The notes under the pieces were generated by a model. That model was given only the letters and a program-made list of their open reading frames with translations. It was not told where the DNA came from and searched no databases. Shown here one piece after another: positions 18,787-49,206 of a stretch of 64,000 nt of DNA; the first letter of the stretch is position 1; the number at the start of each line of letters is the position of its first letter. The position numbers and the translations under genes are program-made. The stretch is from positions 15,376,001 to 15,440,000 of the forward strand of contig OZ059894.1 of assembly GCA_964057225.1 (NCBI GenBank). The letters are read 5' to 3'. The stretch is from Auanema rhodensis (Eukaryota; Animalia; Nematoda).

Positions 18787-20720
18787 ATGTCTGAGTCTCC
18801 AGGGACTACGGTCCGGCGACGTAATCCGTCTCGGGATTCAAAGTTGAGCCAAAGTAGCTCATCTACCTGTAGTGCTTCCAGGAAATGGTCCTTTGCTCGT
18901 AAAAGAGAGGAGGAAAAGAAGAAAGGGTTTGGCTTATATTACCTTTCTGTGTGATTTGTGTTCTCTTATAGTCCAGTAGAGAAAACTGTTCATCGCCCTC
19001 AAGATTCTTTGTTCAGCACCAGTTCGGGGTGGACTAACTATCGGGGATTTTTCAACTTGGCTATGCTCTTGCTGGTATTACAAGAATATTTGAATATTTT
19101 GGATCGAAAATGTTTAGATTGTGTCCAATGGAAGAGTGGCATTAGAAAATCTGATCAAATATGGGATTCTTATTTCTCCCACACAGTTAGTGCTTATGTT
19201 TATTCAAGGTTCTTCATTATGGAGTTGGCCAAATCTTGCGCTTATTATACTATCGAATATCACAATTCTTGTAATATTTTTTACTGAAAAACTTTTAGGT
19301 ATTTAGACTTTTTTTTTATGTAAAAGAAAGTACTTTTTTTTTAGAAAAGGGATACTTAGGAAACTATTTTGCTGGTGTTTTTTATCCTATTCTTATATGT
19401 TCGCATCTGATTATTCCTGCCATAGTAACCCTCTATGTTCAAGTTAGTCCTGCTTACAGATTAGGGTAAAATCTTGGTATTTTGATAGAGTAATCCTCTG
19501 TTTTCTGTGGTTGCCCTAGGAATCTATGTTATTGAAGCTCTTAAGCTCACTTCGTACGTTCATGTGAATTATTGGTGTCGTTGTGCACGAATTGATAAGA
19601 AATCAGAAGAACAGCTCTCAGAAGATCTCAGACATGATGTGAGCGTAACCGTTCTGCAATTAACAATTTTAACGTTTTAGTCTTCTCACTACGAAATTTC
19701 TTCTTTATATCCTGGAACTCTCAACTTACGAAACTTGTACTACTTTTTGGTTGCACCAACCTTGTGCTATGAATTAAAGTTCCCCAGATCTGCTCGCCGA
19801 CGAAAAAGCTTTTTAATTAAAAGAACAATAGAAGTACCGTTTATGTGTATATATTCATTTATTTATTTAAATAAGAATTTAGCTTATATTCTTATCATTC
19901 TTGATTGTTGCTCTCGTCCAACAATGGGTTGTACCTACCGTAAGAAACAGTATGGGACCATTGAGTGAGATGGAATTGGGAAAGTGAGTTTTGTAAATGT
20001 CAATAAATTCAATTTTTTTTTCAGATGTCTTGAGCGTTTACTTAAGCTTGCAATTCCAAATATTTTCATTTGGCTGATTTTCTTCTATACTTTGTTCCAT
20101 TCGGCTCTTAATTTAATCGCCGAGGTTTTAAGATTTGCTGATAGAGAATTCTACAGGTTTTGGTAACGTCTTTTCTTCTTTGATATGTAAATTACAGGGA
20201 CTTCTGGAACGCTGAAACCATTCAGCATTTCTGGAAAACATGGAATATTCCTGTTCATCGATGGGCACTTCGCCACATTTATTTGCCAATGATGAGAAAC
20301 AATTATAGGTTTGAGTTTTACGCAAGTTTTAATTATAACATTTGTTGATTATAGCAAGAAAAGTGCAATGATAGTGGTTTTTTTTGTTTCCGCGTTTTTC
20401 CATGAATATCTAGTTTGTTATTATATTATTTTAGCATCGAAATATGTCACCTTTGTAGGTATCAGTTCCATTATCTATGTTCCGTTTATGGGCTTACTAT
20501 GGAATGATGGGTCAAATACCTTTATCATTTATAACTGACTATGTTATTAAGGGTGGTAGAGCAGGTTTGAAATACCTTTTTACCCTCATAATAAAATTAT
20601 AAAGGAAACATTGTTGTATGGCTCTCTCTAATTGTTGGACAACCTTTGGCTATTCTGATGTATGTCCATGACTGGTATATCTTACACCAGCCTGTCGTTG
20701 ATGGAACATCTGTGGATTAA
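18787..20720 (+). CDS. mboa-2: Diacylglycerol O-acyltransferase 1 (MBOAT family)
   Basis: [92 protein letters not shown] (catalytic His). Stop TAA at 20718-20720. Confidence 0.95.
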
Positions 20721-21038
20721 CAATAAAATTCTTTTTCCGATTGTAATAGTATTAGTAATTTTTCATATTTGTAATTTTATGATTTGTTGTGTTTTTAAAG
20801 TGTGTTCATAGTTAAGATTTAACCAAAATCTTCTGAAGTGTATTTATTTGCAGGTTAACTAGTACGCGTTTACTTTCTTCTATATAGTCTTTTCAACTTG
20901 TGCCGTATGTTTTTGAAAATCAAAGCAGTTTTAACTTTAATAAAGCTTATTTTACTGATTTTGTGTAACTACTGAATGGATAAACCAATAAATGCTTTAT
21001 GCACTGAAATTAATTTATTTCGAACATGAAACACAGTA

Positions 21039-21890
21039 ATGATCTCTATCTACCCTGTCAAGCACCATGGTAAAACTTACTTCATTTATTGGATTATGGA
21101 ATTAGAGTTATTGGGTAAATTACATATTTTAGACTTGTTATTATTCTATTATAGGTGTGACTGATGGAGGAAGTGTTGTTTATCAAGAAAAATTGAGTAG
21201 GGATAGTAGAATATTGTTTCTAAAACAAGAGATCGACGACGATTTTTGGGGGTATGTTGCATAGAATTATTTAAATTTTATTCTATTCATAGTTCTCAAA
21301 AGAAGTTGAAAATTTGAAATAAAATTTTGTTAAATTACTCAATCATATACAAATACTCAATATCAAAAAGAAATGTAGATATTTAAGCTGATGTGAGTTT
21401 TATAACTTGAACAATTGAATATATATGTTTATTTGAAACATAAAAGTTTTTTATACAACTAATTACAGGAAAATGATTGAGGATGAAGAGTTAGGAATAA
21501 AGAATCTAACTGAAGAAATGGTTATAATAAGCAGGTATTCATTTTCCTAATGAAAATGATTCAAAACATCGTTTTCCAGGGGTACAAAGTCACTTGAACT
21601 GAAATCTGTAAGAGATTTAGGCGTATCACTATGTCAAATAATGAACAGACTTGTTATAACACTTAAGGTAAAGTAATTTACCTGTATAAATTGAATCATG
21701 AAATTCACTATAGGGGAACAAAGCGGAAAGTTCTCCTAGAAAATCTCTTTCTACTAATTTGAAGAAAAAGGAGTCTCCAATGAAAGTTAGTTATCTCTTC
21801 TCTTCTTGAAATATACATACGTTTCAGAGAACTACATTTGCTATAGCCAAAAAGAAAAAAATTGATAACAATAATGAAATCATAGACTAA
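21039..21890 (+). CDS. nhj-1: Small XRCC4/XLF/PAXX-like protein, probable nhj-1/scb-1 orthologue (copy A)
   Basis: Six-exon model absent from the ORF track: MISIYPVKHHGKTYFIYWIMELELLGVTDGGSVVYQEKLSRDSRILFLKQEIDDDFWGKMIEDEELGIKNLTEEMVIISRGTKSLELKSVRDLGVSLCQIMNRLVITLKGNKAESSPRKSLSTNLKKKESPMKRTTFAIAKKKKIDNNNEIID*. It has a VTDG head motif, a helix and a basic tail. It lies just downstream of mboa-2, as I recall for C. elegans H19N07.3/H19N07.4. The name is an inference. Confidence 0.65.
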
Positions 21891-22007
21891 ACTTCTAAAA
21901 TATTGGCATTTACCTAACTAGTTTCATTACAATCTTTAAACTCATCCTAACTGTTACAGTTTTAAATAGTAAGTATTATATTACAATATGCCTTCACCCA
22001 TAATCAG

Positions 22008-23519
22008 TTACAGGGGAATTCCGATTATTTTATACAACAAGTATTCCTGAAAAGCTAGTTTGTCGTCTTTACGCATGCTTTGGTATTCCTTATATGTAAA
22101 AACTTTGTGTAATGATATTGTATCCGTAACCTGATCCCACATATTATACTGAAATGAATATACATAGTTAACTGAAATGATTGTTTGTCATTCTAACTTT
22201 GAAATGCCCCATGTCGTATTTCCATAAGAGCAGAATTCGTTCACTTATACCCAATCTCGAGCTGCTCAATAAAAATTCACCACAGGAACATAAAGCTCTT
22301 TCCATCTTGAAAATAAAGGCAACTCTGCTAAGTCGTTTGACATTTTCATCTGAAAAAATTTCAAAAATCAAACAAAAAATCAGAAAATATAAAATTACCA
22401 GTAATATGGTAACTGTAACCATATAATATATTGAATACGTTCAGAATATCATCGAATTCTAAGTTTTTAATATTTATAATAATTTCTCTTTTTTTCTGGA
22501 GTAAAACTCTTATATAGTTGATAATGATAATCAAAACCAACAGCGACATCCTCAGTTTCATTGCTATTCACACTTCCTTCTTGATCTACTTGTTTTGATG
22601 TATCGTCATTTTCGTCGTCTTCGTCATCTTCGTGATCTGTGTCCTATAACATATGGAAATATATACTCATTCAAATTTGAATTTACCATGGATACATCCT
22701 TTGTATCAATTTTATCGTTTTGCTTGTAATTCTTAAGTTTTGCAAAATCAAAATTCTTTCCTGTACTATGAATTACAAAAAATACTAAATTTAGCAATGA
22801 CTACCTTCCATCAAATCTTTCATAACCGAAGAATGAACAGATAAAATCTTAAAGATAATAAAATTTATCTCAACAACAATCAAAATACCTGTGAGTGGCA
22901 GTATAACTTATTCTCTCCGAAGGAAACGGCAATATCCCAAGAATCAGATTCCGAAATTTTTAACTGAGAAGATATTTGTCTATAAAAAACATATTGAACA
23001 TATATTTGGAAATATCCAAATTTACTCAAAACTATCAAAACGTAGGATATTAGCTACGACAGAAATAGAGTCTCCACCCTTTAACTGATATCCTCCGCCC
23101 CACTCTTTGAATACTAAAGCTTTATTTCCAAGCCCATTAACAAGTACCTAAAAAATATCTATTCCAACACTTTCGACCAGCATGAAAACCTCATTTATAA
23201 AACATTTCATATTAACTTGAGCGTTGAATCCAGTGTGGTTGTATTGTTTTAAAGTTTGATACCATAAATACAATATCGGATTTTGTGTTTTGTCTGTAAA
23301 CAATTTTATTTCAAATTAAAACTTCTTTTATTTTTAAATTATGATAAAATATAATCTTGCCTTCATCCTTTGCCTTCACACATCTGAAAACATTTGAATC
23401 TCAAATCTAAAACCTTGTTTTCAAACTTACAGTGCTATGAAGTCATTTTTAAACAAAACAGGAACTTTTCTTTCTTGCTCTAGATCATCCGAACATTTAT
23501 ATTCGAAAAAAAATGACAT
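22008..23519 (-). CDS. BTB/POZ adaptor protein with a divergent (MATH-like position) N-terminal domain, copy A
   Basis: Intact spliced ORF: MSFFFEYKCSDDLEQERKVPVLFKNDFIAL-CVKAKDE-DKTQNPILYLWY...; BTB core SWDIAVSFGENKLYCHSQILSVHSSVMKDLME...EIIINIKNLEFDDILNVFNILYGYSYHITDENVKRLSRVAFIFKMERALCSCGEFLL; ends YKIIGIPL*. Contains one GC-AG intron. Confidence 0.88.
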
Positions 23520-23607
23520 CTGATTATAAATATGATTAATATCAGCATAATATAATATAATCAACAAATTAATTTAATGAGCTCGAAGACTATAATGATA
23601 GTATATT

Positions 23608-23678
23608 GTTTCGTAATAATTCGTTTCGTAATATTAGTTTCGTAATATTCGTTTCGTAATAATTCGTTTCGTAATAAT
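23608..23678. repeat. Minisatellite, ~5 copies of GTTTCGTAAT(A)ATTC, unique to copy A
   Basis: gtttcgtaataattc gtttcgtaatatta gtttcgtaatattc gtttcgtaataattc gtttcgtaataat; replaced by unrelated sequence in copies B and C. Confidence 0.9.
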
Positions 23679-23730
23679 AAAACAAAAAAAATTAATTTCC
23701 AAATAATAAAAAGTTTCATAATTTCATTTC

Positions 23731-23928
23731 ATAGTCAGATATCATTTTTTTTTAAATATGAATGTTCAGATGATCTCGAGCAAGAAAGAAAAGTTCCTGT
23801 TTTGTTTAAAAATAAAAGAAGTTTTAATTTAAAATAAAATTGTTTACAGACAAAACACAAAATCCGATATTGCATTTATGGTATCAAAATTTAGAATTTA
23901 GAAAAAGAATACAAAGACATTCGACTCA
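23731..23928 (+). pseudogene. Inverted 5' fragment of the BTB gene (arm A; ATG mutated to ATA, internal deletion of exon 2)
   Basis: Reverse complement of ~23256-23530. The deletion falls between two TTTAAAAAT microhomologies. Confidence 0.88.
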
Positions 23929-23977
23929 TCTGACATTTATTAAGTAATTTATTTATATTATAATATATAAATGTTTC

Positions 23978-24512
23978 GGTTCTTTTTCCGTTTCTATACC
24001 CCCCGATTTTAGCCCCGCCCCTTTTGCCGTTGGGCGCATACTTTTCTACCATTCGGCTTCCCTTCCTAAAACGGGGGGGTTTGGGGGGGTTTCCCCCCCT
24101 ATGGGGATATCTATAATAAGTGTAATAAACCTTGAATATATTATGATATAAAAACTAAATCATTATTGGTTATTGCATCTACATTATCAACCATTTTTTG
24201 TCTAAATGTTTGCTCCAAAAGAACGGCTTCTTACTGAAGCTGATGCCATTCAATTCTTGCAAGAAAAAGGTATAGTCTTTGAGACTAACGAATGTGAGCG
24301 ATGTTAACGAAAAATGAGTCTTTCTTTTGCTCGAAATAAGTCGAGATGTACCATAAAAGACTGTAGAAGGAAAATTCTAAAAAAAATGGAACATTTGTGG
24401 ATATCTGGATACCACCGTATCTCATATAGGTATCACATTTTAATAAAAGTATGTGCCTAACGGCAAAAGGGGCGGGGCTTAAGACGGGGGGTATAGAAAC
24501 GGAAAAAGCGCC
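23978..24512 (+). mobile_element. Non-autonomous Merlin (IS1016/ISXO2-like) DNA transposon, internal deletion derivative
   Basis: 8-bp TSD AATGTTTC at 23970-23977 and 24513-24520; ~65-70 bp imperfect TIRs, 5'-GG..CC-3'; empty site (tataAATGTTTCaaatac) in copies B and C. Degenerate ORF from 24206 MFAPKERLLTEADAIQFLQEKGIVFETNECERC*RKMSL...RCTIKDCRRK resembles the N-terminal zinc finger of Merlin transposases. Confidence 0.88.
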
Positions 24513-24650
24513 AATGTTTCAAATACTACAATAATAATTAGAAAAAAACATTAAAATAATTATTTCATAATACCCGTTGAACATGGAATCGTTGTAGCCT
24601 AGTATAGGCTTTTGAATTAATTAAATAATTAAAAATTCTCAATAAAATGA

Positions 24651-25818
24651 TTACTTTTCTGTGGACAACTTGTCTATCATATATTCGACGGTTTTTTGTA
24701 CTTCCTCATCATTTTCATCTGTTTTGCACGTCGTTTCTTTTAGTTCCTGTGAATTAGGAAGTTGATGATCGTTGTTTAGAGAATTACAAGTGAATACAAC
24801 TTTCATCTGATGATCTTTTTTAAGATTACGATGCTGTAAATGGTGAAATGATTTAGAATCCTTCATAGTAAGAATACTCACTCTTGGTTTAGATATGGCA
24901 ATCATCAGGAATATTGGAAGGAATAGTAATCCATGAATCATCGAGAAACTAATAACTAGGAACACTGTCTTGAAAAAAATTAAAACTATATATGAATCGA
25001 CAAGGGTTAACACCAGAATTCCTAAAAGGGTTGACGATGCTCCCTAAAATATATCTTCATGACTGTTGGGCAAACGATTTTCCCAGCTTACCAAGAATAC
25101 AGGCCAACCCAATGTCTCTAAAGATTGAACCACTCGTTCATGAGGATCACCATACGCTTGTGAATACGCATAAGCTATATGAGCAGATAAATCAACAGCA
25201 AAGCCAATGCACATTATGACCTTAAAGTGTAAAATTTCAATTTTCTCTTCTATAAAGTTACTCGGATACCTACCGTAATCATTGAGACACTATCAAGATT
25301 TACACCCCAGAAAGACATATAGCCAAGAACACCTATATAAGTGTATAATCATTAGAAATATGAAATATTATTCTTACCTATGTTAATACTGGCAATAGCT
25401 AATACTACAGCACAAGCTGCTCTGAAGTCTGGAATCATTATGACTGTTACCAAGAACATTGAACCTAGACCCAGAATGAAATTTTGAGATAAAGAAGGTT
25501 TAAGCTCCAAATACTAAAATACATGAACGATATGATAGAGCAAGGTAATAATAGTTCATACCTGATCAGCAAATGGATAGTATTCATGGAAAGTTGTTAC
25601 ATTGAACTGTGAGTACTTTGATGCTATTTCTCTCATAAGTTTACAACTATTTGTATGATCTGTCGGAGTTGCATAGTTACGCAAGCCTAGTTGGAATCGG
25701 AACGCTTTGAGCTTATAGAAATCCTTCAATGAACATTACAGTATATGAACGAAGAATTAGAAATAAACCTCAGGCTGCTTTCCCCAAACCATGTCCATTT
25801 CCCATAATCGTCTACCTC
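24651..25818 (-). pseudogene. 3' fragment of the patched-related gene (copy A, 5'-truncated)
   Basis: Near-identical to 34748-35899; breaks at the 25817-25818 junction. Confidence 0.9.
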
Positions 25819-25975
25819 TCCTAGAAAATCTCTTTCTACTAATTTGAAGAAAAAGGAGTCTCCAATGAAAGTTAGTTATCTCTTCTCTTCTTGAAATATA
25901 CATACGTTTCAGAGAACTACATTTGCTATAGCCAAAAAGAAAAAAATTGATAACAATAATGAAATCATAGACTAA
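25817..25975 (+). pseudogene. 3' fragment of the nhj-1-like gene (copy B)
   Basis: Matches 21732-21890 (SPRKSL...EIID*); no 5' exons. Confidence 0.85.
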
Positions 25976-26092
25976 ACTTCTAAAATATTGGCATTTACCT
26001 AACTAGTTTCATTACAATCTTTAAACTCATCCTAACTGTTACAGTTTTAAATAGTAAGTATTATATTACAATATGCCTTCACCCATAATCAG

Positions 26093-27580
26093 TTACAGGG
26101 GAATTCCGATTATTTTATACAACAAGTATTCCTGAAAAGCTAGTTTGTCGTCTTTACGCATGCTTTGGTATTCCTTATATGTAAAAACTTTGTGTAATGA
26201 TATTGTATCCGTAACCTGATCCCACATATTATACTGAAATGAATATACATAGTTAACTGAAATGATTGTTTGTCATTCTAACTTTGAAATGCCCCATGTC
26301 GTATTTCCATAAGAGCAGAATTCGTTCACTTATATCCAATCTCGAGCTGCTCAATAAAAATTTACCACATGCATATAAAGCTCTTTCTATATTGAAAATA
26401 AAGGCAACTCTGCTAAGTCGTTTGACATTTTCATCTGAAAAAATTTCAAAAATCAAACAAAAAATCAGAAAATATAAAATTACCAGTAATATGGTAACTG
26501 TAACCATATAATATATTGAATACGTTCAGAATATCATTGTGTACTATGTTTTTAATATTTATAATAATTTCTCTTTTTTTCTGGAGTAAAACTCTTATAT
26601 AGTTGATAATGATAATCAAAACCAACAGCGACATCCTCAGTTTTAATGACTTTTACACTTCCTTCTTGATCTTCTTGTTTTGATGAATCCTTATCTGTGT
26701 CCTATAACATATGGAAATATATACTCATTCAAATTTGAATTTACCATGGATACATCCTTTGTATCAATTTTATCGTTTTGCTTGTAATTCTTAAGTTTTG
26801 CAAAATCAAAAATCTTTCCTGTACTATGAATTTCAAAAAATACTAAACTTGACAATGACTACCTTTCATCAAATCTTTCATAACCGAAGAATGAACAGAT
26901 AAAATCTTAAAAATAATAAAATTTATCTTGACAACAATCAAAATACCTGTGAGTGGCAGTACAACTTATTCTCTCCGAAGGAAACGGAAATATCCCAAGA
27001 ATCTGATTTCACAACTTCTAACAACAGAGTAGATAGTTGTCTATAAAAAACATATTGAACATATATTTGGAAATATCCAAATTTACTCAAAATGTTCGAA
27101 AGCTACGATAGTAGCTGCGAAAGAAATGGATTCTCCACCCTCTAACTGATATACTTTCCTAGTCCTGTTGTATACTAAAGCTTCATTTTCACGCTGTACA
27201 ACAAGTTTCTAGAAAATATATATTTCAACACTTTCGACCAGCATGAAAACCTCATTTATAAAGCATTTCATATCAAATCGAGCGTTGAGTCGAATGTCGT
27301 TGAATTTTTTTAAACTTCCATACCATAAATGCAATTTCGGATTTTCTGTTTTGTCTGTAAACAATTTTATTTTAAATTAAAACTTCTTTTATTTTAAAGT
27401 TATGATAAAATATAATCTTGCCGTTTAGCACTGTATCCGCATATCTGAAAATATTTGAATCTCAAATCTAAAACCTTGTTTTCAAACTTACAGTGCTATG
27501 AAGTCATTTTTACACAAAACAGAAGCTTTTCTTTCTTGCTCTAGATCATACGAACATTTATATTTGAGAAGAAATGACAT
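26093..27580 (-). CDS. BTB/POZ adaptor protein, copy B (chimera: 5' part as C, last exon as A)
   Basis: Intact spliced ORF MSFLLKYKCSYDLEQERKASVLCKNDFIAL-YADTVLN-DKTENPKLHLWYGSLKKF...; last exon identical to copy A. Confidence 0.88.
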
Positions 27581-27760
27581 CTGATTATAAATATGATTAA
27601 TATCAGCATAATATAATATAATCAACAAATTAATTTAATGACCTCGAAGAGGACTTCTCTCTCTTTTTATACGTCGTGAATGAAGTTATGAAAGTTTTTA
27701 ATCATAAAACAAACAAAAAAATTAATTTCCAAATTATAAAAAGTTTCATAATTTCATTTC

Positions 27761-28075
27761 ATAGTCAGATGTCATTTCTTTAAAATATGAATGTTCAGAT
27801 GATCTAGAGAAAGAAAGAAAAGTTCCTGTTTTGTTTAAAAATGACTTCATAGAACTGTAAGTTTGAAAACAAGGTTTTAGATTTGAGATTCAAATGTTTT
27901 CAGATGTGTAAAGAAGGCAAAGAATGAAGGCAAAATAATATTTTATCATAATTTAAAAATAAAAGAAGTTTTAATTTAAAATAAAATTGTTTACAGACAA
28001 AACAGAAAATCCGAAATTGTATTTATGGTATCAAAATTTAGAATTTAGAAAAAGAATACAAAGACATTCGATTCA
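27761..28075 (+). pseudogene. Inverted 5' fragment of the BTB gene (arm B; exons 1-3 with introns, frameshift at codon 5)
   Basis: Reverse complement of ~27290-27590; atg tca ttt ctt taa (1-nt deletion); exon 2 reads CVKKAKNE. Confidence 0.9.
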
Positions 28076-28253
28076 TCTGACATTTATTAAGTAATTTATT
28101 TATATTATAATATATAAATGTTTCAAATACTACAATAATAATTAGAAAAAACATTAAAATAATTATTTCATAATACCCGTTGAACATGGAATCGTTGTAG
28201 CCTAGTATAGGCTTTTGAATTAAATAAATAATTAAAAATTCTCAATAAAATGA

Positions 28254-31079
28254 TTACTTTTCTGTGGACAACTTGTCTATCATATATTCGACGGTTTTTT
28301 GTACTTCCTCATCATTTTCATCTGTTTTGCACGTCGTTTCTTTTAGTTCCTGTGAATTAGGAAGTTGATGATCGTTGTTTAGAGAATTACAAGTGAATAC
28401 AACTTTCATCTGATGATCTTTTTTAAGATTACGATGCTGTAAATGGTGAAATGATTTAGAATCCTTCATAGTAAGAATACTTACTCTTGGCTTAGATATG
28501 GCAATCATCAGGAATATTGGAAGGAATAGTAATCCATGAATCATCGAGAAACTAATAACTAGGAACACTGTCTTGAAAAAAATTAAAACTATATATGAAT
28601 CGACAAGGGTTAACACCAGAATTCCTAAAAGGGTTGACGATGCTCCCTAAAATATATCTTCATGACTGTTGGGCAAACGATTTTCCCAGCTTACCAAGAA
28701 TACAGGCCAACCCAATGTCTCTAAAGATTGAACCACTCGTTCATGAGGATCACCATACGCTTGTGAATACGCATAAGCTATATGAGCAGATAAATCAACA
28801 GCAAAGCCAATGCACATTATGACCTTAAAGTGTAAAATTTCAATTTTCTCTTCTATCAAGTTACTCGGATACCTACCGTAATCATTGAGACACTATCAAG
28901 ATTTACACCCCAGAAAGACATATAGCCAAGAACACCTATATAAGTGTATAATCATTAGAAATATGAAATATTATACTTACCTATGTTAATACTGGCAATA
29001 GCTAATACTACAGCACAAGCTGCTCTGAAGTCTGGAATCATTATGACTGTTACCAAGAACATTGAACCTAGACCCAGAATGAAATTTTGAGATAAAGAAG
29101 GTTTAAGCTCCAAATACTAAAATACATGAACGATATGATAGAGCAAGGTAATAATAGTTCATACCTGATCAGCAAATGGATAGTATTCATGGAAAGTTGT
29201 TACATTGAACTGTGAGTACTTTGATGCTATTTCTCTCATAAGTTTACAACTATTTGTATGATCTGTCGGAGTTGCATAGTTACGCAAGCCTAGTTGGAAT
29301 CGGAACGCTTTGAGCTTATAGAAATCCTTCAATGAAAATTACAGTATATGAACGAAGAATTAGAAATAAACCTCAGGCTGCTTTCCCCAAACCATGTCCA
29401 TTTCCCATAATCGTCTACCTCCAGCTATGAGTAACCAGTCTCGACAACGTTCATACCATTCAAAAGATCTAAATTCAATAAAGTATAGACTGATTCATGT
29501 TGAGATAACTTACGAATTTGGTTTTAAAATGTTCAATTCTCTCATTTCCTTTTCAAGATGAAATTCGTATGCTTTAAGCCAAATCATGGTAGCATTTGAA
29601 GACATAGTGTAGTCTGTGTCCTCAAAATCTTGAAAACTTATAATTGTGAAAAACGAGATTAATTGTACTTCGAAAAGGCAGATACTAACTTAGAAACTAA
29701 CCATCTAGCATGAATTGAAACTCTGCTCTGTTTACAGGATCAAATAAATCAGGTGGATTATTGACAACAACTTGCATTTGCAAACCTTAATTTACAAAAT
29801 TTGATATCATTTCAGTTTTTTGAACTTACCTTCTTGCCAGAATGTTTCTTGGATTAGAGAATAGAAGTTGCTAAGATAGAAACTGTCTCGAACAAGAAAT
29901 TTAGGATCTAATCCTTCTTGAATGTTAATACAACCAAATATGGCTAATCCAATATAAAGAACATATAATAGAAAAGCGCAAACCTCAAAATAAAATGACG
30001 TCAGAAATTTTAAAAGAAAGGGTACCTGAGTGCTTCGTTCTAATACAAATGGTCCGATAATATTACGAAACAACTTGTTAACCAACGTTTTCTCCGAATC
30101 ATCTTCCTATAACCGGATAGACTAGTTTCTTTCTTTAGCAACTCTTCTCAAACCGTTTGATGTTCTTCCAATTTATGCTCTAGTTTCTTGAAGAAGCCTT
30201 CGTGATGTATATTTTCTAAATCTTTCTTCTTTTCGGTATTGTTGTTGTTATTCAATTGCTTTTCAGATATTTTGCCCTTATTCTTTGAAGTTTTGCCTCC
30301 AAGGAAGAATAATTTCCATTTGGAATCTAAAAATGAAATAAAACATTTGTTATCAGATAATTGAAACGTACTGGTAGAATCTGAAGATATAGCCTTATGG
30401 TATGTCATAGAATGTATATCGTTCTCTTCCAAAGTAGCAGCATATGATAGAATAGGAGAGAAGAATGTAAGCTTAAAGAAATTATATATTATATAAATTA
30501 AAAAAAAAATTAAAAAATACCTGGTAAATATATGTAAATACTACTTGGATTGAGGTATACAAACAGAACATTCGAACTCCTGGTAATGATGTAAATGTAC
30601 CAATCCCGAATGTCATCTATTATTAAGTTAACATATAAATAATTATAAATATATAATTTACAATATCTGTAATTGAAGTGATTGTAATGGCTACAGCAGC
30701 TTCACTCAATGTATGTGCTACACGTTCAGCAGCTGAATGTTCTGGATTTGTTCTATGCCATTCAGCTGACATAATGAACAGGTCATCAATTCCAATACCT
30801 TAAACAATATATTGATAATATTTAAGTAATTATAAGTATAAATTTTAAATTTGAGTTGTTCAAAATATTTAAAGAACTTACATAATACAAGGAAAGGTGA
30901 AACATTAACAATGGCATTATAGAGTTCACCAACCCACAACAGTAATCCAAAAGATGTAACGATGGCTAGAAGTGGGCAAAGAATACCTTAATATATTTTT
31001 TATTTGACTAATTGTTTGAATACAAAGTTTGAAAGTATTCTTACCCGCTAAGGCAACTAATGGCTTACTACGGACCCAA
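28254..31079 (-). pseudogene. 5'-truncated patched-related gene (copy B), starting inside the sterol-sensing region; in-frame ATG available at 31129
   Basis: Matches 34748-37573; homology ends at ...cggacccaa (31079). It could be translated, so the pseudogene call is tentative. Confidence 0.8.
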
Positions 31080-31318
31080 GATTTTTGTTTTTGTTTCGTA
31101 TATATACGAAAGAAAAAGTAATTAATCATTAAATTAAGTAAAAATTAAGAAAATTGGTTTTAAATAGAAAATGACTAAATTCATTTTAAATATTATTTCT
31201 GCTGTGAGCGGTCGTATATAGTTTCCGTCATATTTGCGTGAATTGACGTACGCCGATTGCTTCACTTTTAACTCAGTTCACCATTGTGTTCTCATAGCTT
31301 TCTCTGTGTTTTCATAAC
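31080..31318. other. 239-bp orphan segment at the B/C duplication junction, with a CpG-rich promoter-like core
   Basis: No match seen elsewhere in the window; core gagcggtcgtatatagtttccgtcatatttgcgtgaattgacgtacgccg. Confidence 0.75.
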
Positions 31319-31617
31319 ATTGTAATAGTATTAGTAATTTTTCATATTTGTAATTTTATGATTTGTTGTGTTTTTAAAGTGTGTTCATAGTTAAGATTTA
31401 ACCAAAATCTTCTGAAGTGTATTTATTTGCAGGTTAACTAGTACGCGTTTACTTTCTTCTATATAGTCTTTTCAACTTGTGCCGTATGTTTTTGAAAATC
31501 AAAGCAGTTTTAACTATAATAAAGCTTATTTTACTGATTTTGTGGAACTATTAAATGGATAAACGAATAAATGCTTCATGCACTGAAATTAATTTATTTC
31601 GAACATGAAACACAGTA

Positions 31618-32469
31618 ATGATCTCTGTCTACCCTGTCAAGCACCATGGTAAAACTTACTTCATTTATTGGATTATGGAATTAGAGTTATTGGGTAAATT
31701 ACAGATTTTAGACTTGTTATTATTCTATTATAGGTGTGACTGATGGAGGAAGTGTTGTTTATCAAGAAAAATTGAGTAGGGATAGTAGAATATTGTTTCT
31801 AAAACAAGAGATCGACGACGAGTTTTGGGGGTATGTTGCATAGAATTATTTAAATTTTATTCTATTCATAGTTCTCAAAAGAAGTTGAAAATTTGAAATA
31901 AAATTTTGTTAAATTACTCAATCATATACAAATACTCAATATCAAAAAGAAATGTAGATATTTAAGCTGATGTGAGTTTTATAGCTTGAACAATTGAATA
32001 TATATGTTTATTTGAAACATAAAAGTTTTTTATACAACTAATTACAGGAAAATGATTGAGGATGAAGAGTTAGGAATAAAGAATCTAACTGAAGAAATGG
32101 TTATAATAAGCAGGTATTCATTTTCCTAATGAAAATGATTCAAAACATCGTTTTCCAGGGGTACAAAGTCACTTGAACTGAAATCTGTAAGAGATTTAGG
32201 CGTATCACTATGTCAAATAATGAACAGACTTGTTATAACACTTAAGGTAAAGTAATTTACCTGTATAAATTGAATCATGAAATTCACTATAGGGGAACAA
32301 AGCGGAAAGTTCTCCTAGAAAATCTCTTTCTACTAATTTGAAGAAAAAGGAGTCTCCAATGAAAGTTAGTTATCTCTTCTCTTCTTGAAATATGCATACG
32401 TTTCAGAGAACTACATTTGCTATAGCCAAAAAGAAAAAAATTGATAACAATAATGAAATCATAGACTAA
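31618..32469 (+). CDS. nhj-1: nhj-1-like XRCC4/PAXX-type protein (copy C, intact)
   Basis: Same exon structure as 21039-21890; two amino-acid changes seen (I4V and DDD to DDE). Confidence 0.65.
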
Positions 32470-32586
32470 ACTTCTAAAATATTGGCATTTACCTAACTAG
32501 TTTCATTACAATTTTTCAATTCATCCTAACTGTTACAGTTTTAAATAGTAAGTATTATATTACAATATGCCTCCACCCATAATCAG

Positions 32587-34074
32587 TTACAGGGGAATTC
32601 CGATCATTTTATACAGCAAGTATTCCTGAAAAGCTAGTTTGCTGTCTTTACACATGCTTTGGTATTCCTCATTTGTGAATACTCTGTGTAATAATTTTGT
32701 ATCCTTAACCTGATCCCACATATTATACTGAAATGAATATACATAGTTAACTGAAATGATTGTTTGTCATTCTAACTTTGAAATGCCCCATGTCGTATTT
32801 CCATAAGAGCAGAATTCGTTCACTTATATCCAATCTCGAGCTGCTCAATAAAAATTTACCACATGCATATAAAGCTCTTTCTATATTGAAAATAAAGGCA
32901 ACTCTGCTAAGTCGTTTGACATTTTCATCTGAAAAAATTTCAAAAATCAAACAAAAAATCAGAAAATATAAAATTACCAGTAATATGGTAACTGTAACCA
33001 TATAATATATTGAATACGTTCAGAATATCATTGTGTACTATGTTTTTAATATTTATAATAATTTCTCTTTTTTTCTGGAGTAAAACTCTTATATAGTTGA
33101 TAATGATAATCAAAACCAACAGCGACATCCTCAGTTTTAATGACTTTTACACTTCCTTCTTGATCTTCTTGTTTTGATGAATCCTTATCTGTGTCCTATA
33201 ACATATGGAAATATATACTCATTCAAATTTGAATTTACCATGGATACATCCTTTGTATCAATTTTATCGTTTTGCTTGTAATTCTTAAGTTTTGCAAAAT
33301 CAAAAATCTTTCCTGTACTATGAATTTCAAAAAATACTAAACTTGACAATGACTACCTTTCATCAAATCTTTCATAACCGAAGAATGAACAGATAAAATC
33401 TTAAAAATAATAAAATTTATCTTGACAACAATCAAAATACCTGTGAGTGGCAGTACAACTTATTCTCTCCGAAGGAAACGGAAATATCCCAAGAATCTGA
33501 TTTCACAACTTCTAACAACAGAGTAGATAGTTGTCTATAAAAAACATATTGAACATATATTTGGAAATATCCAAATTTACTCAAAATGTTCGAAAGCTAC
33601 GATAGTAGCTGCGAAAGAAATGGATTCTCCACCCTCTAACTGATATACTTTCCTAGTCCTGTTGTATACTAAAGCTTCATTTTCACGCTGTACAACAAGT
33701 TTCTAGAAAATATATATTTCAACACTTTCGACCAGCATGAAAACCTCATTTATAAAGCATTTCATATCAAATCGAGCGTTGAGTCGAATGTCGTTGAATT
33801 TTTTTAAACTTCCATACCATAAATGCAATTTCGGATTTTCTGTTTTGTCTGTAAACAATTTTATTTTAAATTAAAACTTCTTTTATTTTAAAGTTATGAT
33901 AAAATATAATCTTGCCGTTTAGCACTGTATCCGCATATCTGAAAATATTTGAATCTCAAATCTAAAACCTTGTTTTCAAACTTACAGTGCTATGAAGTCA
34001 TTTTTACACAAAACAGAAGCTTTTCTTTCTTGCTCTAGATCATACGAACATTTATATTTGAGAAGAAATGACAT
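32587..34074 (-). CDS. BTB/POZ adaptor protein, copy C
   Basis: Same as B except the last exon (YNMWDQVKDTKLLHRVFTNEEYQSMCKDSKLAFQEYLLYKMIGIPL*). Confidence 0.88.
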
Positions 34075-34254
34075 CTGATTATAAATATGATTAATATCAG
34101 CATAATATAATATAATCAACAAATTAATTTAATGACCTCGAAGAGGACTTCTCTCTCTTTTTATACGTCGTGAATGAAGTTATGAAAGTTTTTAATCATA
34201 AAACAAACAAAAAAATTAATTTCCAAATTATAAAAAGTTTCATAATTTCATTTC

Positions 34255-34569
34255 ATAGTCAGATGTCATTTCTTTAAAATATGAATGTTCAGATGATCTA
34301 GAGAAAGAAAGAAAAGTTCCTGTTTTGTTTAAAAATGACTTCATAGAACTGTAAGTTTGAAAACAAGGTTTTAGATTTGAGATTCAAATGTTTTCAGATG
34401 TGTAAAGAAGGCAAAGAATGAAGGCAAAATAATATTTTATCATAATTTAAAAATAAAAGAAGTTTTAATTTAAAATAAAATTGTTTACAGACAAAACAGA
34501 AAATCCGAAATTGTATTTATGGTATCAAAATTTAGAATTTAGAAAAAGAATACAAAGACATTCGATTCA
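34255..34569 (+). pseudogene. Inverted 5' fragment of the BTB gene (arm C)
   Basis: Same as arm B at offset 6494. Confidence 0.9.
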
Positions 34570-34747
34570 TCTGACATTTATTAAGTAATTTATTTATATT
34601 ATAATATATAAATGTTTCAAATACTACAATAATAATTAGAAAAAACATTAAAATAATTATTTCATAATACCCGTTGAACATGGAATCGTTGTAGCCTAGT
34701 ATAGGCTTTTGAATTAATTAAATAATTAAAAATTCTCAATAAAATGA

Positions 34748-37700
34748 TTACTTTTCTGTGGACAACTTGTCTATCATATATTCGACGGTTTTTTGTACTT
34801 CCTCATCATTTTCATCTGTTTTGCACGTCGTTTCTTTTAGTTCCTGTGAATTAGGAAGTTGATGATCGTTGTTTAGAGAATTACAAGTGAATACAACTTT
34901 CATCTGATGATCTTTTTTAAGATTACGATGCTGTAAATGGTGAAATGATTTAGAATCCTTCATAGTAAGAATACTCACTCTTGGTTTAGATATGGCAATC
35001 ATCAGGAATATTGGAAGGAATAGTAATCCATGAATCATCGAGAAACTAATAACTAGGAACACTGTCTTGAAAAAAATTAAAACTATATATGAATCGACAA
35101 GGGTTAACACCAGAATTCCTAAAAGGGTTGACGATGCTCCCTAAAATATATCTTCATGACTGTTGGGCAAACGATTTTCCCAGCTTACCAAGAATACAGG
35201 CCAACCCAATGTCTCTAAAGATTGAACCACTCGTTCATGAGGATCACCATACGCTTGTGAATACGCATAAGCTATATGAGCAGATAAATCAACAGCAAAG
35301 CCAATGCACATTATGACCTTAAAGTGTAAAATTTCAATTTTCTCTTCTATCAAGTTACTCGGATACCTACCGTAATCATTGAGACACTATCAAGATTTAC
35401 ACCCCAGAAAGACATATAGCCAAGAACACCTATATAAGTGTATAATCATTAGAAATATGAAATATTATACTTACCTATGTTAATACTGGCAATAGCTAAT
35501 ACTACAGCACAAGCTGCTCTGAAGTCTGGAATCATTATGACTGTTACCAAGAACATTGAACCTAGACCCAGAATGAAATTTTGAGATAAAGAAGGTTTAA
35601 GCTCCAAATACTAAAATACATGAACGATATGATAGAGCAAGGTAATAATAGTTCATACCTGATCAGCAAATGGATAGTATTCATGGAAAGTTGTTACATT
35701 GAACTGTGAGTACTTTGATGCTATTTCTCTCATAAGTTTACAACTATTTGTATGATCTGTCGGAGTTGCATAGTTACGCAAGCCTAGTTGGAATCGGAAC
35801 GCTTTGAGCTTATAGAAATCCTTCAATGAAAATTACAGTATATGAACGAAGAATTAGAAATAAACCTCAGGCTGCTTTCCCCAAACCATGTCCATTTCCC
35901 ATAATCGTCTACCTCCAGCTATGAGTAACCAGTCTCGACAACGTTCATACCATTCAAAAGATCTAAATTCAATAAAGTATAGACTGATTCATGTTGAGAT
36001 AACTTACGAATTTGGTTTTAAAATGTTCAATTCTCTCATTTCCTTTTCAAGATGAAATTCGTATGCTTTAAGCCAAATCATGGTAGCATTTGAAGACATA
36101 GTGTAGTCTGTGTCCTCAAAATCTTGAAAACTTATAATTGTGAAAAACGAGATTAATTGTACTTCGAAAAGGCAGATACTAACTTAGAAACTAACCATCT
36201 AGCATGAATTGAAACTCTGCTCTGTTTACAGGATCAAATAAATCAGGTGGATTATTGACAACAACTTGCATTTGCAAACCTTAATTTACAAAATTTGATA
36301 TCATTTCAGTTTTTTGAACTTACCTTCTTGCCAGAATGTTTCTTGGATTAGAGAATAGAAGTTGCTAAGATAGAAACTGTCTCGAACAAGAAATTTAGGA
36401 TCTAATCCTTCTTGAATGTTAATACAACCAAATATGGCTAATCCAATATAAAGAACATATAATAGAAAAGCGCAAACCTCAAAATAAAATGACGTCAGAA
36501 ATTTTAAAAGAAAGGGTACCTGAGTGCTTCGTTCTAATACAAATGGTCCGATAATATTACGAAACAACTTGTTAACCAACGTTTTCTCCGAATCATCTTC
36601 CTATAACCGGATAGACTAGTTTCTTTCTTTAGCAACTCTTCTCAAACCGTTTGATGTTCTTCCAATTTATGCTCTAGTTTCTTGAAGAAGCCTTCGTGAT
36701 GTATATTTTCTAAATCTTTCTTCTTTTCGGTATTGTTGTTGTTATTCAATTGCTTTTCAGATATTTTGCCCTTATTCTTTGAAGTTTTGCCTCCAAGGAA
36801 GAATAATTTCCATTTGGAATCTAAAAATGAAATAAAACATTTGTTATCAGATAATTGAAACGTACTGGTAGAATCTGAAGATATAGCCTTATGGTATGTC
36901 ATAGAATGTATATCGTTCTCTTCCAAAGTAGCAGCATATGATAGAATAGGAGAGAAGAATGTAAGCTTAAAGAAATTATATATTATATAAATTAAAAAAA
37001 AAATTAAAAAATACCTGGTAAATATATGTAAATACTACTTGGATTGAGGTATACAAACAGAACATTCGAACTCCTGGTAATGATGTAAATGTACCAATCC
37101 CGAATGTCATCTATTATTAAGTTAACATATAAATAATTATAAATATATAATTTACAATATCTGTAATTGAAGTGATTGTAATGGCTACAGCAGCTTCACT
37201 CAATGTATGTGCTACACGTTCAGCAGCTGAATGTTCTGGATTTGTTCTATGCCATTCAGCTGACATAATGAACAGGTCATCAATTCCAATACCTTAAACA
37301 ATATATTGATAATATTTAAGTAATTATAAGTATAAATTTTAAATTTGAGTTGTTCAAAATATTTAAAGAACTTACATAATACAAGGAAAGGTGAAACATT
37401 AACAATGGCATTATAGAGTTCACCAACCCACAACAGTAATCCAAAAGATGTAACGATGGCTAGAAGTGGGCAAAGAATACCTTAATATATTTTTTATTTG
37501 ACTAATTGTTTGAATACAAAGTTTGAAAGTATTCTTACCCGCTAAGGCAACTAATGGCTTACTACGGACCCAATCAATTGCAATAAATCCATTTCCATGA
37601 TTAATCAGTACAACACAAACGGCGAAACAAAATGTGAAGAGAATTGTACATGTTCCTAAAATATATTGAATACTGATGTTGAATAGTTTGAAGTTACAAA

Positions 37701-39038
37701 CCTACAAACTTAGGTGTCAATGTATCGGCGACGTCTTGAAGTCCTTCAGGTAGACTCTCATTATGACATATTCCAAACTCAAGAATATCTAAAAGAGAGT
37801 AGCTTATTGAATTGATTCTCAAATACTTTCAAAGAAATGAAAACTTGAAATACAAACCTGATACTGGATGTTCTTTATTGGTTAACCAATCGGCTAATTC
37901 TTTTCTCCAAATGTAACTGATGTTTCCAACCTGTTGAATGTAATTGATTTTCCATTTCAAATACAGTTATCTCATACCTTTTCATCTCGTGTGTTATACG
38001 TCAGACGAACAGCAGTAGCATAATCAAAATGACCATCATCATCAACTAAGTTTGGACTACCAACAATTGCCCCAAAATAGATTGGCTCTGATCCACGCCA
38101 ACCAATCGGATAAGTGATATTGATCTAAACATTTTTTATAAGAGATATAAAGATAATGATTCAAAATTACAATAAAGATTAATAACCAGAATGAATTGAC
38201 TTACTTCAGTATTTATGATATCACTTGCAATCTCAGCTATTGGTCCACTAAAATTACCCCAACGAGATTTTGGCATAAGCATAGTGAGATGATCATTCAG
38301 ATAGCAAGCCCAATCATATGTCATGCATAAGTCTGTATAAGCAACCTAGTGTAGGAATCAATAAAGATATTTTTTGAATAAATAAATGAAAAACCTCATA
38401 TTTCTTTCCTTCAACTTCAACGGGTACTGTTAAATTATGAATAATATAATTATTAATTCGAGCAATTTCATCCACATATCGAATATTTAGAATATTAGGA
38501 CGTCCATACTGTGGATGTTTCTTACCAGCCACTAAAATAAAAATTAAAAAAAATATTTAAATGTTTTGAAATATTTCAAACCTATAATATCAACATATCC
38601 ATTCAAATCATAACTTTTTCCTGGCCAAAATTTTGTTTCATCTAAAGGCCAATGTTCTGCCAAAACCTAAAAAACATATTAGATTATTTAATAAAATCTA
38701 TCATGATTAATGAAAAATCTTACGGCTCTCTCGTATCTCCATGGGGCATATTTTGGAGAAAATACAAACTGAGGATCTTTGGTGGTCTAAATTTCATAAA
38801 TAAAACTCTAATAGAAACTGAAAATATGTTACCAATTGTTCAAGCCATACTAATCCGTAGGCAGAAAATGCTGTGAAAGCCAAAGATGTTATAAGAAACT
38901 CAAAACGGTACTATAACATGTTCAAATATTTTATGAAATACAACAAAATATTTTTGTTTAGTTATTTCTTACCTTATGAATAACAAAACCAAGATTAAAG
39001 AAAGCCTTATGAATGGCGTCGTCAAAACGACGTCCCAT
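34748..39038 (-). CDS. Patched-related (PTR) sterol-sensing-domain RND-type membrane protein, full-length
   Basis: tttcag|ATG at 39038: MGRRFDDAIHKAFFNLGFVIHK...; WVRSKPLVALAG, VSPFLVLCIGIDDLFIM (GxDD), EAAVAITITSITDI, QEGLDPKFLVRDSFYL, IGFAVDLSAHIAY, FFKTVFLVISFSMIHGLLFLP. Paralogue number not assignable. Confidence 0.95.
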
Positions 39039-44915: not shown

Positions 44916-47588
<2,673 letters not shown>

Positions 47589-49123: not shown

Positions 49124-49206
49124 CCGTCGATAGCTCAGTTGGTAGAGCGGAGGACTGTAGAGTTGTGGGCATCCTTAGGTCGCTGGTTCGAATCCGGCTC
49201 GACGGA
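49124..49206 (+). tRNA. tRNA-Tyr(GTA) with a 10-nt intron (49161-49170)
   Basis: CCGTCGA TAGCTCAGTTGGTAGAGC GGAGGACTGTAG [agttgtgggc] ATCCTTAGGTCGCTGGTTCGAATCCGGC TCGACGGA; mature length 73 nt; T-run downstream. Confidence 0.96.

Follow-up and report, generated by a model that had tools for sequence, protein, structure and literature searches.

The window, that is, the whole 64-kb stretch of DNA analysed here, contains a tandem array that we delineated by self-BLAST and repeat finding. The array consists of the following segments, with positions numbered from the start of the window:

20740-21731, segment X_A, co-duplicated as X_B and carrying most of an nhj-1-like gene
21732-25816, segment Y_A
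25817-31079, segment Y_B+Z_B
31080-31318, 239-bp filler that separates the end of unit B from X_B, at the junction of the larger duplication
31319-32310, segment X_B, the copy of X_A
32311-37573, segment Y_C+Z_C

X_A and X_B differ at 10 of 992 nt, and units B and C share 99.6% identity across 5263 nt. Three copies of a multi-exon gene, genes A to C, lie in the array, and no further paralogue was found in the 64-kb window by tblastn. The genes are accompanied by inverted pseudogene arms, copies of a patched-related (ptr) gene and a transposon:

22008..23519, minus strand, gene A, 11 exons, 345 aa, N-terminal type ancestral-like
23739..23977, plus strand, inverted pseudogene arm of unit A, internally deleted, exon 1 being followed by part of intron 2 and exon 3
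23978..24512, strand not given, non-autonomous transposon of ~535 bp with terminal inverted repeats, restricted to unit A
24513..25816, minus strand, 3' fragment of ptr (SSD domain), unit A, cut off at the Y_A|Y_B junction
26093..27580, minus strand, gene B, 337 aa, a chimera; 26947 is the end of a spliced RNA contig of the B/C type
27754..28043, plus strand, inverted arm of unit B, with an A-like exon 2 that has 3 extra bases; outgroup for polarity
28117..31079, minus strand, ptr copy of unit B, 5' end truncated at the end of the unit
32587..34074, minus strand, gene C, 337 aa, N-terminal type as in B, exon 11 variant its own
34248-34534, plus strand, inverted arm of unit C, counterpart of the unit B arm
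34611..38792, minus strand, ptr copy of unit C, the sole copy that runs into single-copy 5' exons

The ptr copies, described in the first-pass annotation as separated by a few SNPs, differ at 4-7 positions per ~1300 nt. The ptr homologues carry the name SSD domain proteins, and the matches are to distant nematodes only. A Pfam search with the ptr tail ORF gave only a sub-threshold match, to an adenylate cyclase domain. A spliced 3.1-kb ptr RNA contig runs past 25818, and its bases there occur only at 29422 and 35916. The transposon of unit A is flanked by an 8-bp target duplication (AATGTTTC), which together with the terminal inverted repeats points to a hAT-like element. The DNA runs show the element to be multi-copy, as its summed contig depth is ~900-1700 and that of the gene A exons on its left side ~130-180.

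The single-copy 5' exons of the unit C ptr gene (37854-38792) are syntenic with an outgroup nematode. On the syntenic contig of this outgroup (locus L001), ptr directly adjoins the orthologue of window positions 19898-20541; BTB or nhj-like DNA is absent between the two, and Pfam names none of the ORFs of the locus. The gene is missing from the syntenic position in the outgroup. Together with the nhj-1-like gene, it would sit between two genes that are directly adjacent in the related nematode. The amplification can be described as two nested segmental duplications. The first would have copied X-Y-Z (6.25 kb) and added the 239-bp filler, and the second would have copied Y (3.6 kb) within the first unit through a microhomology joint. 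The Y_A|Y_B junction at 25816/25817 contains 2-3 nt of microhomology, and no independent contig bridging it was found among the read contigs of the sequencing runs. This, and the much shallower depth of A-type than of B-type contigs in run X8, would fit an assembly artefact in which two divergent alleles of one gene were set in tandem. Such an artefact is extremely unlikely. Both types recur, identical in every base, in DNA runs from two further studies and together in the same RNA runs; the joint at the junction is clean and shows microhomology; a transposon insertion and an arm deletion are private to unit A; and there are three exon combinations rather than two.

Exon models built for each copy yielded three intact 11-exon genes on the minus strand. 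As the first-pass annotation had stated, the ORFs are open (345, 337, and 337 aa) and the splice sites are intact at the ends of all 30 introns. The ten introns of each copy have GT-AG ends, except for intron 2, which is GC-AG. The exons of gene A are:

23519-23431, 23383-23361, 23293-23190, 23147-23026, 22979-22889, 22847-22805, minus strand, exons 1-6
22760-22687, 22643-22542, 22495-22399, 22349-22198, 22148-22008, minus strand, exons 7-11

Exon 8 of gene A is acidic and exceeds that of B/C by 9 codons, and A is separated from B/C by two indels, both in frame (27 and 3 nt). The genes are expressed and spliced. All ten introns of gene A are supported by spliced RNA contigs (runs X10 and X13), including the GC-AG intron beside the 23-nt exon, and spliced transcripts of the B/C type are also present. 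Expression of the copies, on which the first-pass annotation had made its reading depend, is established for the two types, A and B/C.

The product is probably a BTB/POZ protein (PF00651), judging from its sequence. Exons 5-6 and 9-10 display a BTB-like residue pattern by eye (for example SDSWDIAVSFGENKLYCHSQILS and ILNVFNILYGY), and exon 10 has language-model matches to BTB/BACK clusters (0.87-0.93). The Atlas language-model search gave no usable match for exons 9 and 4. Family searches used single exons of gene A as queries: Pfam returned no match at E<=1 for six exons, a PDB sequence search returned none at E<=10 for exon 10, and HMMER returned 0 matches for exon 10 among 1.84 billion representative proteins, a library that at the exon level contains neither the protein of this genome nor any relative. 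Since these single-exon searches were empty, the BTB assignment is unproven. Exons 3 and 4 as single queries had no Pfam match to MATH/TRAF (PF00917); the N-terminal region of ~112 aa fits a MATH domain in size and position, and homology with MATH was not detected. At the site of the usual CUL-3 contact loop lies a linker of ~60 aa, much of it acidic, instead of the usual short one. By eye, the hydrophobic signal sequence that a secreted product of the venom-toxin type would have is absent from the N-terminus (MSFFFEYKCSDDLEQERK). The product would be an intracellular, lineage-specific protein of ~340 aa, in which a ~112 aa N-terminal domain is followed by a probable BTB domain, which a long acidic loop interrupts, and by a C-terminal tail of ~95 aa. 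By analogy with the MATH-BTB and F-box genes of C. elegans, it may bind CUL-3 and function as an adaptor, and its N-terminal domain may bind substrates.

Overall, exon changes exceed intron changes when A is compared with the other copies. Between A and B, 98 of 1009 exonic positions differ, compared with 14 of 474 intronic positions (Fisher p=1.4e-6); between A and C, the counts are 111/1009 and 14/474. The most diverged coding stretch comprises exons 2-4:

23026..23383, minus strand, exons 2-4 of gene A
27087-27444, minus strand, exons 2-4 of gene B
33581-33938, minus strand, exons 2-4 of gene C

Here, A differs from B/C at 58 of 247 positions, compared with 7 of 202 in introns 1-4 (Fisher p=2.9e-10). 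Exon 2 is changed at 12 of 23 nt and 7 of 7 residues (CVKAKDE vs YADTVLN), exon 3 at 16 of 104 nt and 14 of 35 residues, and exon 4 at 30 of 120 nt and 22 of 41 residues. These residue counts reproduce those of the first-pass annotation exactly, as do the single difference in the 47 nt of intron 1 and the identity of intron 4 (0/46). The introns that flank exon 2 are changed at 1/47 and 3/67 positions. Across residues 1-112, 45% are replaced between the A type and the C type. Conservation in this region is equal for hydrophobic and other residues, so this test gave no support for changes that target the protein surface. In the 3' half, introns 7-10 are unchanged (0/187) and exons 8-10 differ at 20 of 324 positions, with ~20 non-synonymous and 2 synonymous changes (NG86 path counts). 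The gene had been described as triplicated and hypervariable. Three copies are present, but there are two N-terminal types rather than three, as B equals C in exons 1-10.

We compared the substitution rates at the codon level. By NG86, dN is 0.128 and dS 0.053 over the whole gene (dN/dS 2.4), and 0.375 and 0.108 over exons 2-4 (dN/dS 3.5). Omega from GY94 maximum likelihood, which with just two sequence types reflects one pairwise comparison at the whole-sequence level, without site or branch resolution, is 2.8-3.3 for the whole gene, 4.2 for exons 1-5 and 6.8 for exons 2-4, and exceeds 1 in a likelihood-ratio test (p = 4e-4 to 8e-4). For the remainder of the gene outside the N-terminal exons, omega is 1.8-2.8 and not significant. 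Thus, the rapid amino-acid diversification proposed in the first-pass annotation is borne out (omega >1, p<1e-3) and is driven by selection. A dN/dS at or below 1 with synonymous sites equally diverged had been set beforehand as the outcome that would overturn that proposal; dN/dS is above 1 and silent divergence is low, and the proposal stands. Codon positions 1, 2, and 3 differ at 50, 36, and 20 sites, the third being the least changed. Synonymous divergence (8/107) matches that of the introns (14/287), a neutral rate that may be understated, given partial constraint on the short introns of nematodes. Synonymous and third-codon sites do not exceed the introns in divergence, which rules out import from an old paralogue whose silent sites had become saturated.

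The probable BTB core shows the opposite relation to its introns: exons 6-7 differ at 2 of 117 positions and the adjoining introns at 7 of 85, indicating that the gene is under selection and not decaying. This bears on relaxed constraint, under which the copies would be drifting toward pseudogenes. The copies are recent tandem duplicates, a survey of recent duplicates among nematode genes describes fast BTB gene turnover in Caenorhabditis (bioRxiv 10.1101/2022.03.10.483751), and the B/C-type RNA contigs are of low depth, with contig depths too confounded to give copy number or expression level. Nevertheless, omega is significantly above 1 and not merely near it, the three ORFs and the splice-site ends of their introns are intact, both indels keep the frame, exons 6-7 are more conserved than their own introns, and both types are transcribed and spliced. 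Such drift is very improbable.

Divergence is not uniform along the array. The flanks differ by 0.3-1%, introns 1-6 by 4.9% (p=4e-7 against the ptr part) and introns 7-10 by 0%, indicating a mosaic locus in which sequence was exchanged at a later stage. The term "very young" in the first-pass annotation suits the flanks but not introns 1-6. Over the 5' two-thirds of the gene, neutral divergence is ~5%, 5-10 times more than in the flanks; a young duplicate plus selection is therefore an incomplete account, and later homogenisation or exchange is needed. Gene B is chimeric, which demonstrates that the copies exchange sequence: its exons 1-10 are identical to C, its exon 11 and 3' flank are identical to A, and the breakpoint lies between 26211 and 26335. 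B and C differ in exon 11 alone (13/141 nt), in one patch:

32605..32705, minus strand, exon 11 patch of gene C, unlike A and B at 13 sites
26111-26211, minus strand, corresponding patch of gene B

The patch contains 10 non-synonymous and 3 synonymous changes (NG86), and the adjacent non-coding DNA differs at 5 of 325 positions (Fisher p=2e-4).

The mosaic divergence and the exchange proven by gene B would also be expected if the two types were old paralogues or old balanced alleles, whose introns and flanks were homogenised by frequent gene conversion while selection kept the exon differences, a form of concerted evolution that leaves islands of divergence. We regard this as quite unlikely. 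Synonymous sites linked to the selected sites are just 5-10% diverged and unsaturated, third positions are changed least, and conversion would have had to level ten introns (41-67 nt) yet leave the exons (23-150 nt) alone, in many very short tracts that stop at splice sites.

The inverted arms allowed us to polarise the changes. The arm of unit A and gene A lie head-to-head, separated by a ~220-bp spacer. With the arm of unit B as an outgroup, 20 of the 22 informative sites from exon 1 to intron 2 match A; the B/C type is derived, and this polarity covers exons 1-2. Variants of the gene and of the arm occur in all four combinations, showing that sequence is exchanged inside the palindrome.

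This exchange raises the question of whether short exon segments were swapped wholesale and then kept by selection, either through templated micro-conversion, with unseen paralogues or the inverted arm as donors, or through an ASSET-like segment switch. Exon 2 is essentially unrelated between the types, the differences within exons 9-11 are grouped in patches (12-100 nt) with identical DNA around them, and snake toxins provide a precedent, in which changed exon segments lie beside introns of >85% similarity by an unknown mechanism (PMC2711939). On the other hand, no donor for exon 2 of the B type is present in the window beyond B and C, and no additional paralogue. Exon 2 of the arm is A-like and not B-like, so the derived segment cannot stem from the arm. 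Hits per codon in exons 1-5 are Poisson-like (80/47/13/3 observed, 80.6/46.2/13.3/2.5 expected), and the low share of third positions is more in keeping with point substitutions under selection than with unrelated DNA having been copied in. We give wholesale swapping a small chance of being correct.

We consider it probable that nested duplications were followed by positive selection on a lineage-specific probable BTB adaptor and then by exchange. The A and C gene lineages would have fixed amino-acid replacements at several times the neutral rate, affecting the 45% of residues 1-112 noted above and short patches in the BTB part and the last exon. This pattern would correspond to a binding surface under recurrent positive selection, as in an adaptor that recognises substrates and is caught in an arms race. 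Exchange at a later stage would have made B equal to C from exon 10 upstream and equal to A downstream, so that the array would encode three different proteins from two N-terminal and two C-terminal types. Exon 2 speaks against positive selection and exchange as the full account: one of its codons is changed at all three positions, and changes at 12 of 23 bases between introns changed at 1/47 and 3/67 are hard to reach by single steps. The donor search covered the 64-kb window; a donor paralogue may lie elsewhere in the genome. A germline diversification device, in which recurrent breaks in the palindrome and short-tract templated repair rewrite exon-sized segments and spare the introns, is a doubtful proposition. 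It is just as speculative that the device rewrote exon 2 as well as the exon 9-11 patches, with the tandem copies reshuffling segments and the intermediates still visible.

Coding parts that outpace introns and silent sites are the mark of an arms race, already known for such genes. Nematode MATH-BTB and F-box adaptors show positive selection in their substrate-binding domains (Thomas 2006, as cited in PMC5392922; bioRxiv 10.1101/2022.03.10.483751). Like the MATH-BTB (bath) and F-box adaptors, the genes described here are lineage-specific tandem duplicates with fast turnover; selection is concentrated in the N-terminal exons and the putative cullin-side core (exons 6-7) is conserved, just as those adaptors combine a conserved cullin-side domain with positive selection in the other domain. 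Both are also intracellular without a signal peptide, and recognition of pathogen or selfish-element proteins has been proposed for the adaptors. By this analogy, a role in defence or genetic conflict, driven by pathogens or selfish elements, may be envisaged here. The differences are the long acidic linker, the MATH domain that single-exon searches did not detect, the changed patches inside the BTB part and the C-terminal exon, and the lack of homologues of exon 10 in the protein library; family membership by sequence is putative.

Snake-venom toxin genes (PMC2711939) share with this array exons far more diverged than introns and UTRs, an excess of non-synonymous over synonymous changes, tandem paralogy, and short exon segments that have become unrelated while introns of the same genes are still similar. 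The exon-over-intron divergence and dN above dS found here follow this venom-type pattern of accelerated evolution. However, the toxins are secreted, disulphide-rich and act on prey, whereas this product is predicted to be intracellular, and the present comparison, unlike the venom study, concerns one three-copy array with a dated neutral background. Resistance-gene and immune-receptor clusters, such as plant NLR and MHC/KIR, evolve by birth and death together with sequence exchange. They resemble the array in their tandem copies, chimeras made by exchange, and diversified recognition surfaces over a homogenised background, but belong to another protein family with another mode of action.

The array offers a clean natural experiment, in that neutral divergence is 0.3-5%, yet 45% of the residues of one domain differ, and it supplies an internal outgroup (the arm), a natural domain-swap chimera (gene B) and expression. 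The replacement of a 23-nt exon between near-unchanged introns bears on the question posed by venom genes, whether point mutation and selection are enough. If the germline device were real, an ASSET-like mechanism would be at work in an animal gene for intracellular recognition. Should the product be a CUL-3 adaptor, different targets would be expected for the two N-terminal types, and naming those targets would show what drives the arms races of nematode adaptors.

Self-comparison of the window revealed a nested tandem array, in which three minus-strand copies of a probable BTB adaptor gene lie within duplicated segments. Segment X carries most of an nhj-1-like gene, segment Y the BTB-like gene with an inverted partial pseudogene copy of its 5' end (the arm), and segment Z a further part of a patched-related (ptr) gene.

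Components of the array
20740-21731, segment X_A
21732-25816, segment Y_A
23519-22008, minus strand, gene A
23739-23977, inverted arm of unit A
23978-24512, hAT-like non-autonomous transposon of ~535 bp, in unit A only
25817-31079, segments Y_B and Z_B
27580-26093, minus strand, gene B
27754-28043, inverted arm of unit B
after Z_B and before X_B, filler of 239 bp
31319-32310, segment X_B
32311-37573, segments Y_C and Z_C
34074-32587, minus strand, gene C
34248-34534, inverted arm of unit C

Over 5263 nt, units B and C share 99.6% identity; of the 21 mismatches, 18 fall within 25900-26211 and none in Z. A microhomology of 2-3 nt marks the Y_A|Y_B junction, where the interior of the ptr gene meets the beginning of Y. 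The arm is present in every unit, lies head-to-head with the gene's 5' end and spans exon 1 to the middle of exon 3. At the centre of the palindrome, the A and B spacers can hardly be aligned, and the B and C spacers are unlike that of A. Between gene A and its arm, the spacer contains a short tandem repeat (23600-23680, unit close to TTCGTTTCGTAATA). Terminal inverted repeats of ~55 nt bound the transposon, its 8-bp target duplication reads AATGTTTC, and B and C retain the empty site. In DNA runs, the contig depths sum to ~900-1700 at the transposon versus ~130-180 at the gene A exons on its left side, indicating that it belongs to a multi-copy family. It is unlikely that the array is an artefact of assembly.

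All three genes were modeled with 11 exons in open frames (345 aa in A, 337 aa in B and 337 aa in C) and introns of 41-67 nt. Contigs from two public runs of one study are spliced, which identifies the runs as RNA. For gene A, introns 1-4 and 6-9 are precisely absent from them, while introns 5 and 10 are covered by loose contig ends and by a joint that leads into exon 11 of B, which is identical. These contigs also confirm intron 2 with its GC-AG ends, the 23-nt exon 2 beside it and exon 8, which is acidic. Another spliced contig, ending at 26947, is of the B/C type. Thus, both the A type and the B/C type are transcribed, and this is not the unexpressed locus against which the first-pass annotation had cautioned. 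The contig depths are unfit for ranking expression among the copies.

The product has no signal peptide, and its residues 1-112 matched nothing. By eye, a BTB-like residue pattern is seen at residues ~125-157 and 217-275, separated by a linker of ~60 aa; the acidic part of this linker, encoded by exon 8, has 9 more residues in A. The net charge is -14 in A versus +3 in B and C. Exon-level searches of Pfam, the PDB and, with HMMER, a set of 1.84 billion proteins gave no match; language-model matches of exon 10 to BTB/BACK clusters mark the limit of objective BTB support. The product is probably a BTB protein, and its N-terminal domain may be MATH-like.

The first-pass annotation had described fast-diversifying N-terminal exons within near-identical introns, and its difference counts were reproduced exactly.

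Nucleotide differences between gene A and genes B/C (introns 41-67 nt each)
Exon 1, 7/89; intron 1, 1
Exon 2, 12/23; intron 2, 3
Exon 3, 16/104; intron 3, 3
Exon 4, 30/120; intron 4, 0
Exon 5, 11/91; intron 5, 3
Exon 6, 1/43; intron 6, 4
Exon 7, 1/74; intron 7, 0
Exon 8, 8/75 plus a 27-nt in-frame indel; intron 8, 0
Exon 9, 5/97; intron 9, 0
Exon 10, 7/152; intron 10, 0
Exon 11, A versus B 0, A versus C 13/141

The excess of exon over intron differences is significant for A-B (Fisher, p=1.4e-6) and A-C (p=3e-8), for exons 2-4 against introns 1-4 (p=2.9e-10), and for exons 8-10 (20/324) against introns 7-10 (0/187, p=1.6e-4). At the protein level, 50 of the 112 N-terminal residues differ, as do 27 of the 224 later ones. 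There are two N-terminal types and not three, B being identical to C in exons 1-10. Exon 11 of C differs from both A and B at 13/141 sites, compared with 5/325 in the adjacent intron and 3' flank (p=2e-4). Therefore, the C-terminal exon is diverging too.

Nonsynonymous change exceeds synonymous change by the NG86 method, both over the whole gene (dN 0.128, dS 0.053) and in exons 2-4 (dN 0.375, dS 0.108). A pairwise GY94 model with F3x4 frequencies, fitted by script, gave a whole-gene omega of 3.3 (A-B) and 2.8 (A-C), rising to 4.2 in exons 1-5 and 6.8 in exons 2-4, with likelihood-ratio tests against omega=1 at p = 4e-4 to 8e-4. For the C-terminal 193 codons, omega was 1.8-2.8 and not significant. 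Differences at codon positions 1, 2 and 3 number 50, 36 and 20, and hits per codon in exons 1-5 fit a Poisson distribution. In exons 1-7, synonymous sites (8/107) cannot be told apart in divergence from introns 1-6 (14/287, p=0.33), and the core exons 6-7 (2/117) are more conserved than the surrounding introns (7/85, p=0.04). Thus, omega does not fall to the 1 or below, with silent sites equally diverged, that had been named as the contrary outcome. The low silent-site divergence within the diverged exons disfavors old paralogs whose introns were homogenized. Since omega exceeds 1, the frames are intact, the core exons are conserved and both types are transcribed, decay of the copies is excluded.

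The arm is found in all three units and is therefore older than the duplications. From exon 1 to intron 2 the unit B arm matches gene A at 20/22 informative sites; of the 12 sites that differ in exon 2, it matches A at 11. Since the arm agrees with A, the B/C type is derived in this region, where its lineage changed at ~17/112 exon bases versus 3/114 intron bases. In exon 3 the arms side with A and with B equally often: at two sites each gene equals its own arm, and at two others gene A equals arm B and gene B equals arm A. Gene and arm variants thus occur in all four combinations (23190-23560, 23739-23977, 27251-27621 and 27754-28043), implying exchange within and between palindromes.

Our main unease concerns exon 2, which, like the patches in exons 9-11, may have arisen by a segment switch as described for snake toxins, in which introns retain >85% similarity and the switch has no known mechanism (PMC2711939). 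The likeness lies in exon 2, which differs at 12/23 bases between introns differing at only 1/47 and 3/67 and has one codon changed at all three positions, and in the tight patches of exons 9-11. However, we found no donor for the derived exon 2 within the window, and the arm holds the ancestral exon version. The likely explanation, in our view, is that a recognition protein has been under recurrent positive selection for amino-acid change and that its tandem copies have exchanged sequence.

Such exchange is also seen in gene B, whose exon 11 and 3' flank are those of A and whose breakpoint falls somewhere from 26211 to 26335. Because B matches C upstream and A downstream, it is a naturally formed chimera and shows that sequence passes between the copies. 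The locus had been called very young; this holds for the ptr part (0.3-0.5% divergence), X (1%) and introns 7-10 (0%), but not for introns 1-6 (4.9%, p=4e-7 versus the ptr part), so its age is not uniform. The simplest history would have five steps: a single X-Y-Z unit; its duplication, with filler at the joint; duplication of Y within the first unit; divergence of two gene lineages; and a long exchange, from exon 10 through Z, that made B like C.

In a related nematode, a contig of 24 kb (L001, 43% GC) aligns over L001:3701-8093 with window positions 19898-20541 and 28504-38792, covering ptr exons that include the single-copy 5' part (37854-38792). Its alignment to 19898-20541 begins only 275 bp past the ptr end, and no BTB-like gene, arm or nhj-1-like gene lies between the two. 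The insert is therefore lineage-specific, or was lost in that nematode. By the same alignment only unit C has a complete ptr copy; in B (28117-31079) the 5' exons are missing, and A (24513-25816) retains only a 3' fragment. Either B or C is the source of a spliced ptr transcript contig of 3.1 kb. The putative ptr identity rests on matches named as SSD domain proteins in strongylid nematodes.

Elsewhere in the window, an 83-nt tRNA (49124-49206, Rfam 61 bits), for which ARAGORN finds no clear anticodon, may carry an intron or an unusual anticodon loop. By eye, the translated ORF at 44916-45176 has a DM (mab-3/doublesex-type) zinc-module pattern, and ORFs at 4352-4955, just upstream of a tRNA-Pro (5440-5511), show an M1 aminopeptidase pattern with a HELAHQ zinc motif. 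Long CT/GA dinucleotide microsatellites at 411-710 and 46902-47222 give SLSLSL runs in translation.

That the substrate-binding domains of expanded nematode MATH-BTB and F-box adaptors evolve under positive selection is established, according to a passage in PMC5392922 citing Thomas 2006, and in Caenorhabditis the BTB genes belong to those with the most recent duplications and the greatest variation in copy number (bioRxiv 10.1101/2022.03.10.483751). By analogy, the locus may have a role in defense or genetic conflict. The array is a very clear further case of the pattern established for nematode adaptors.
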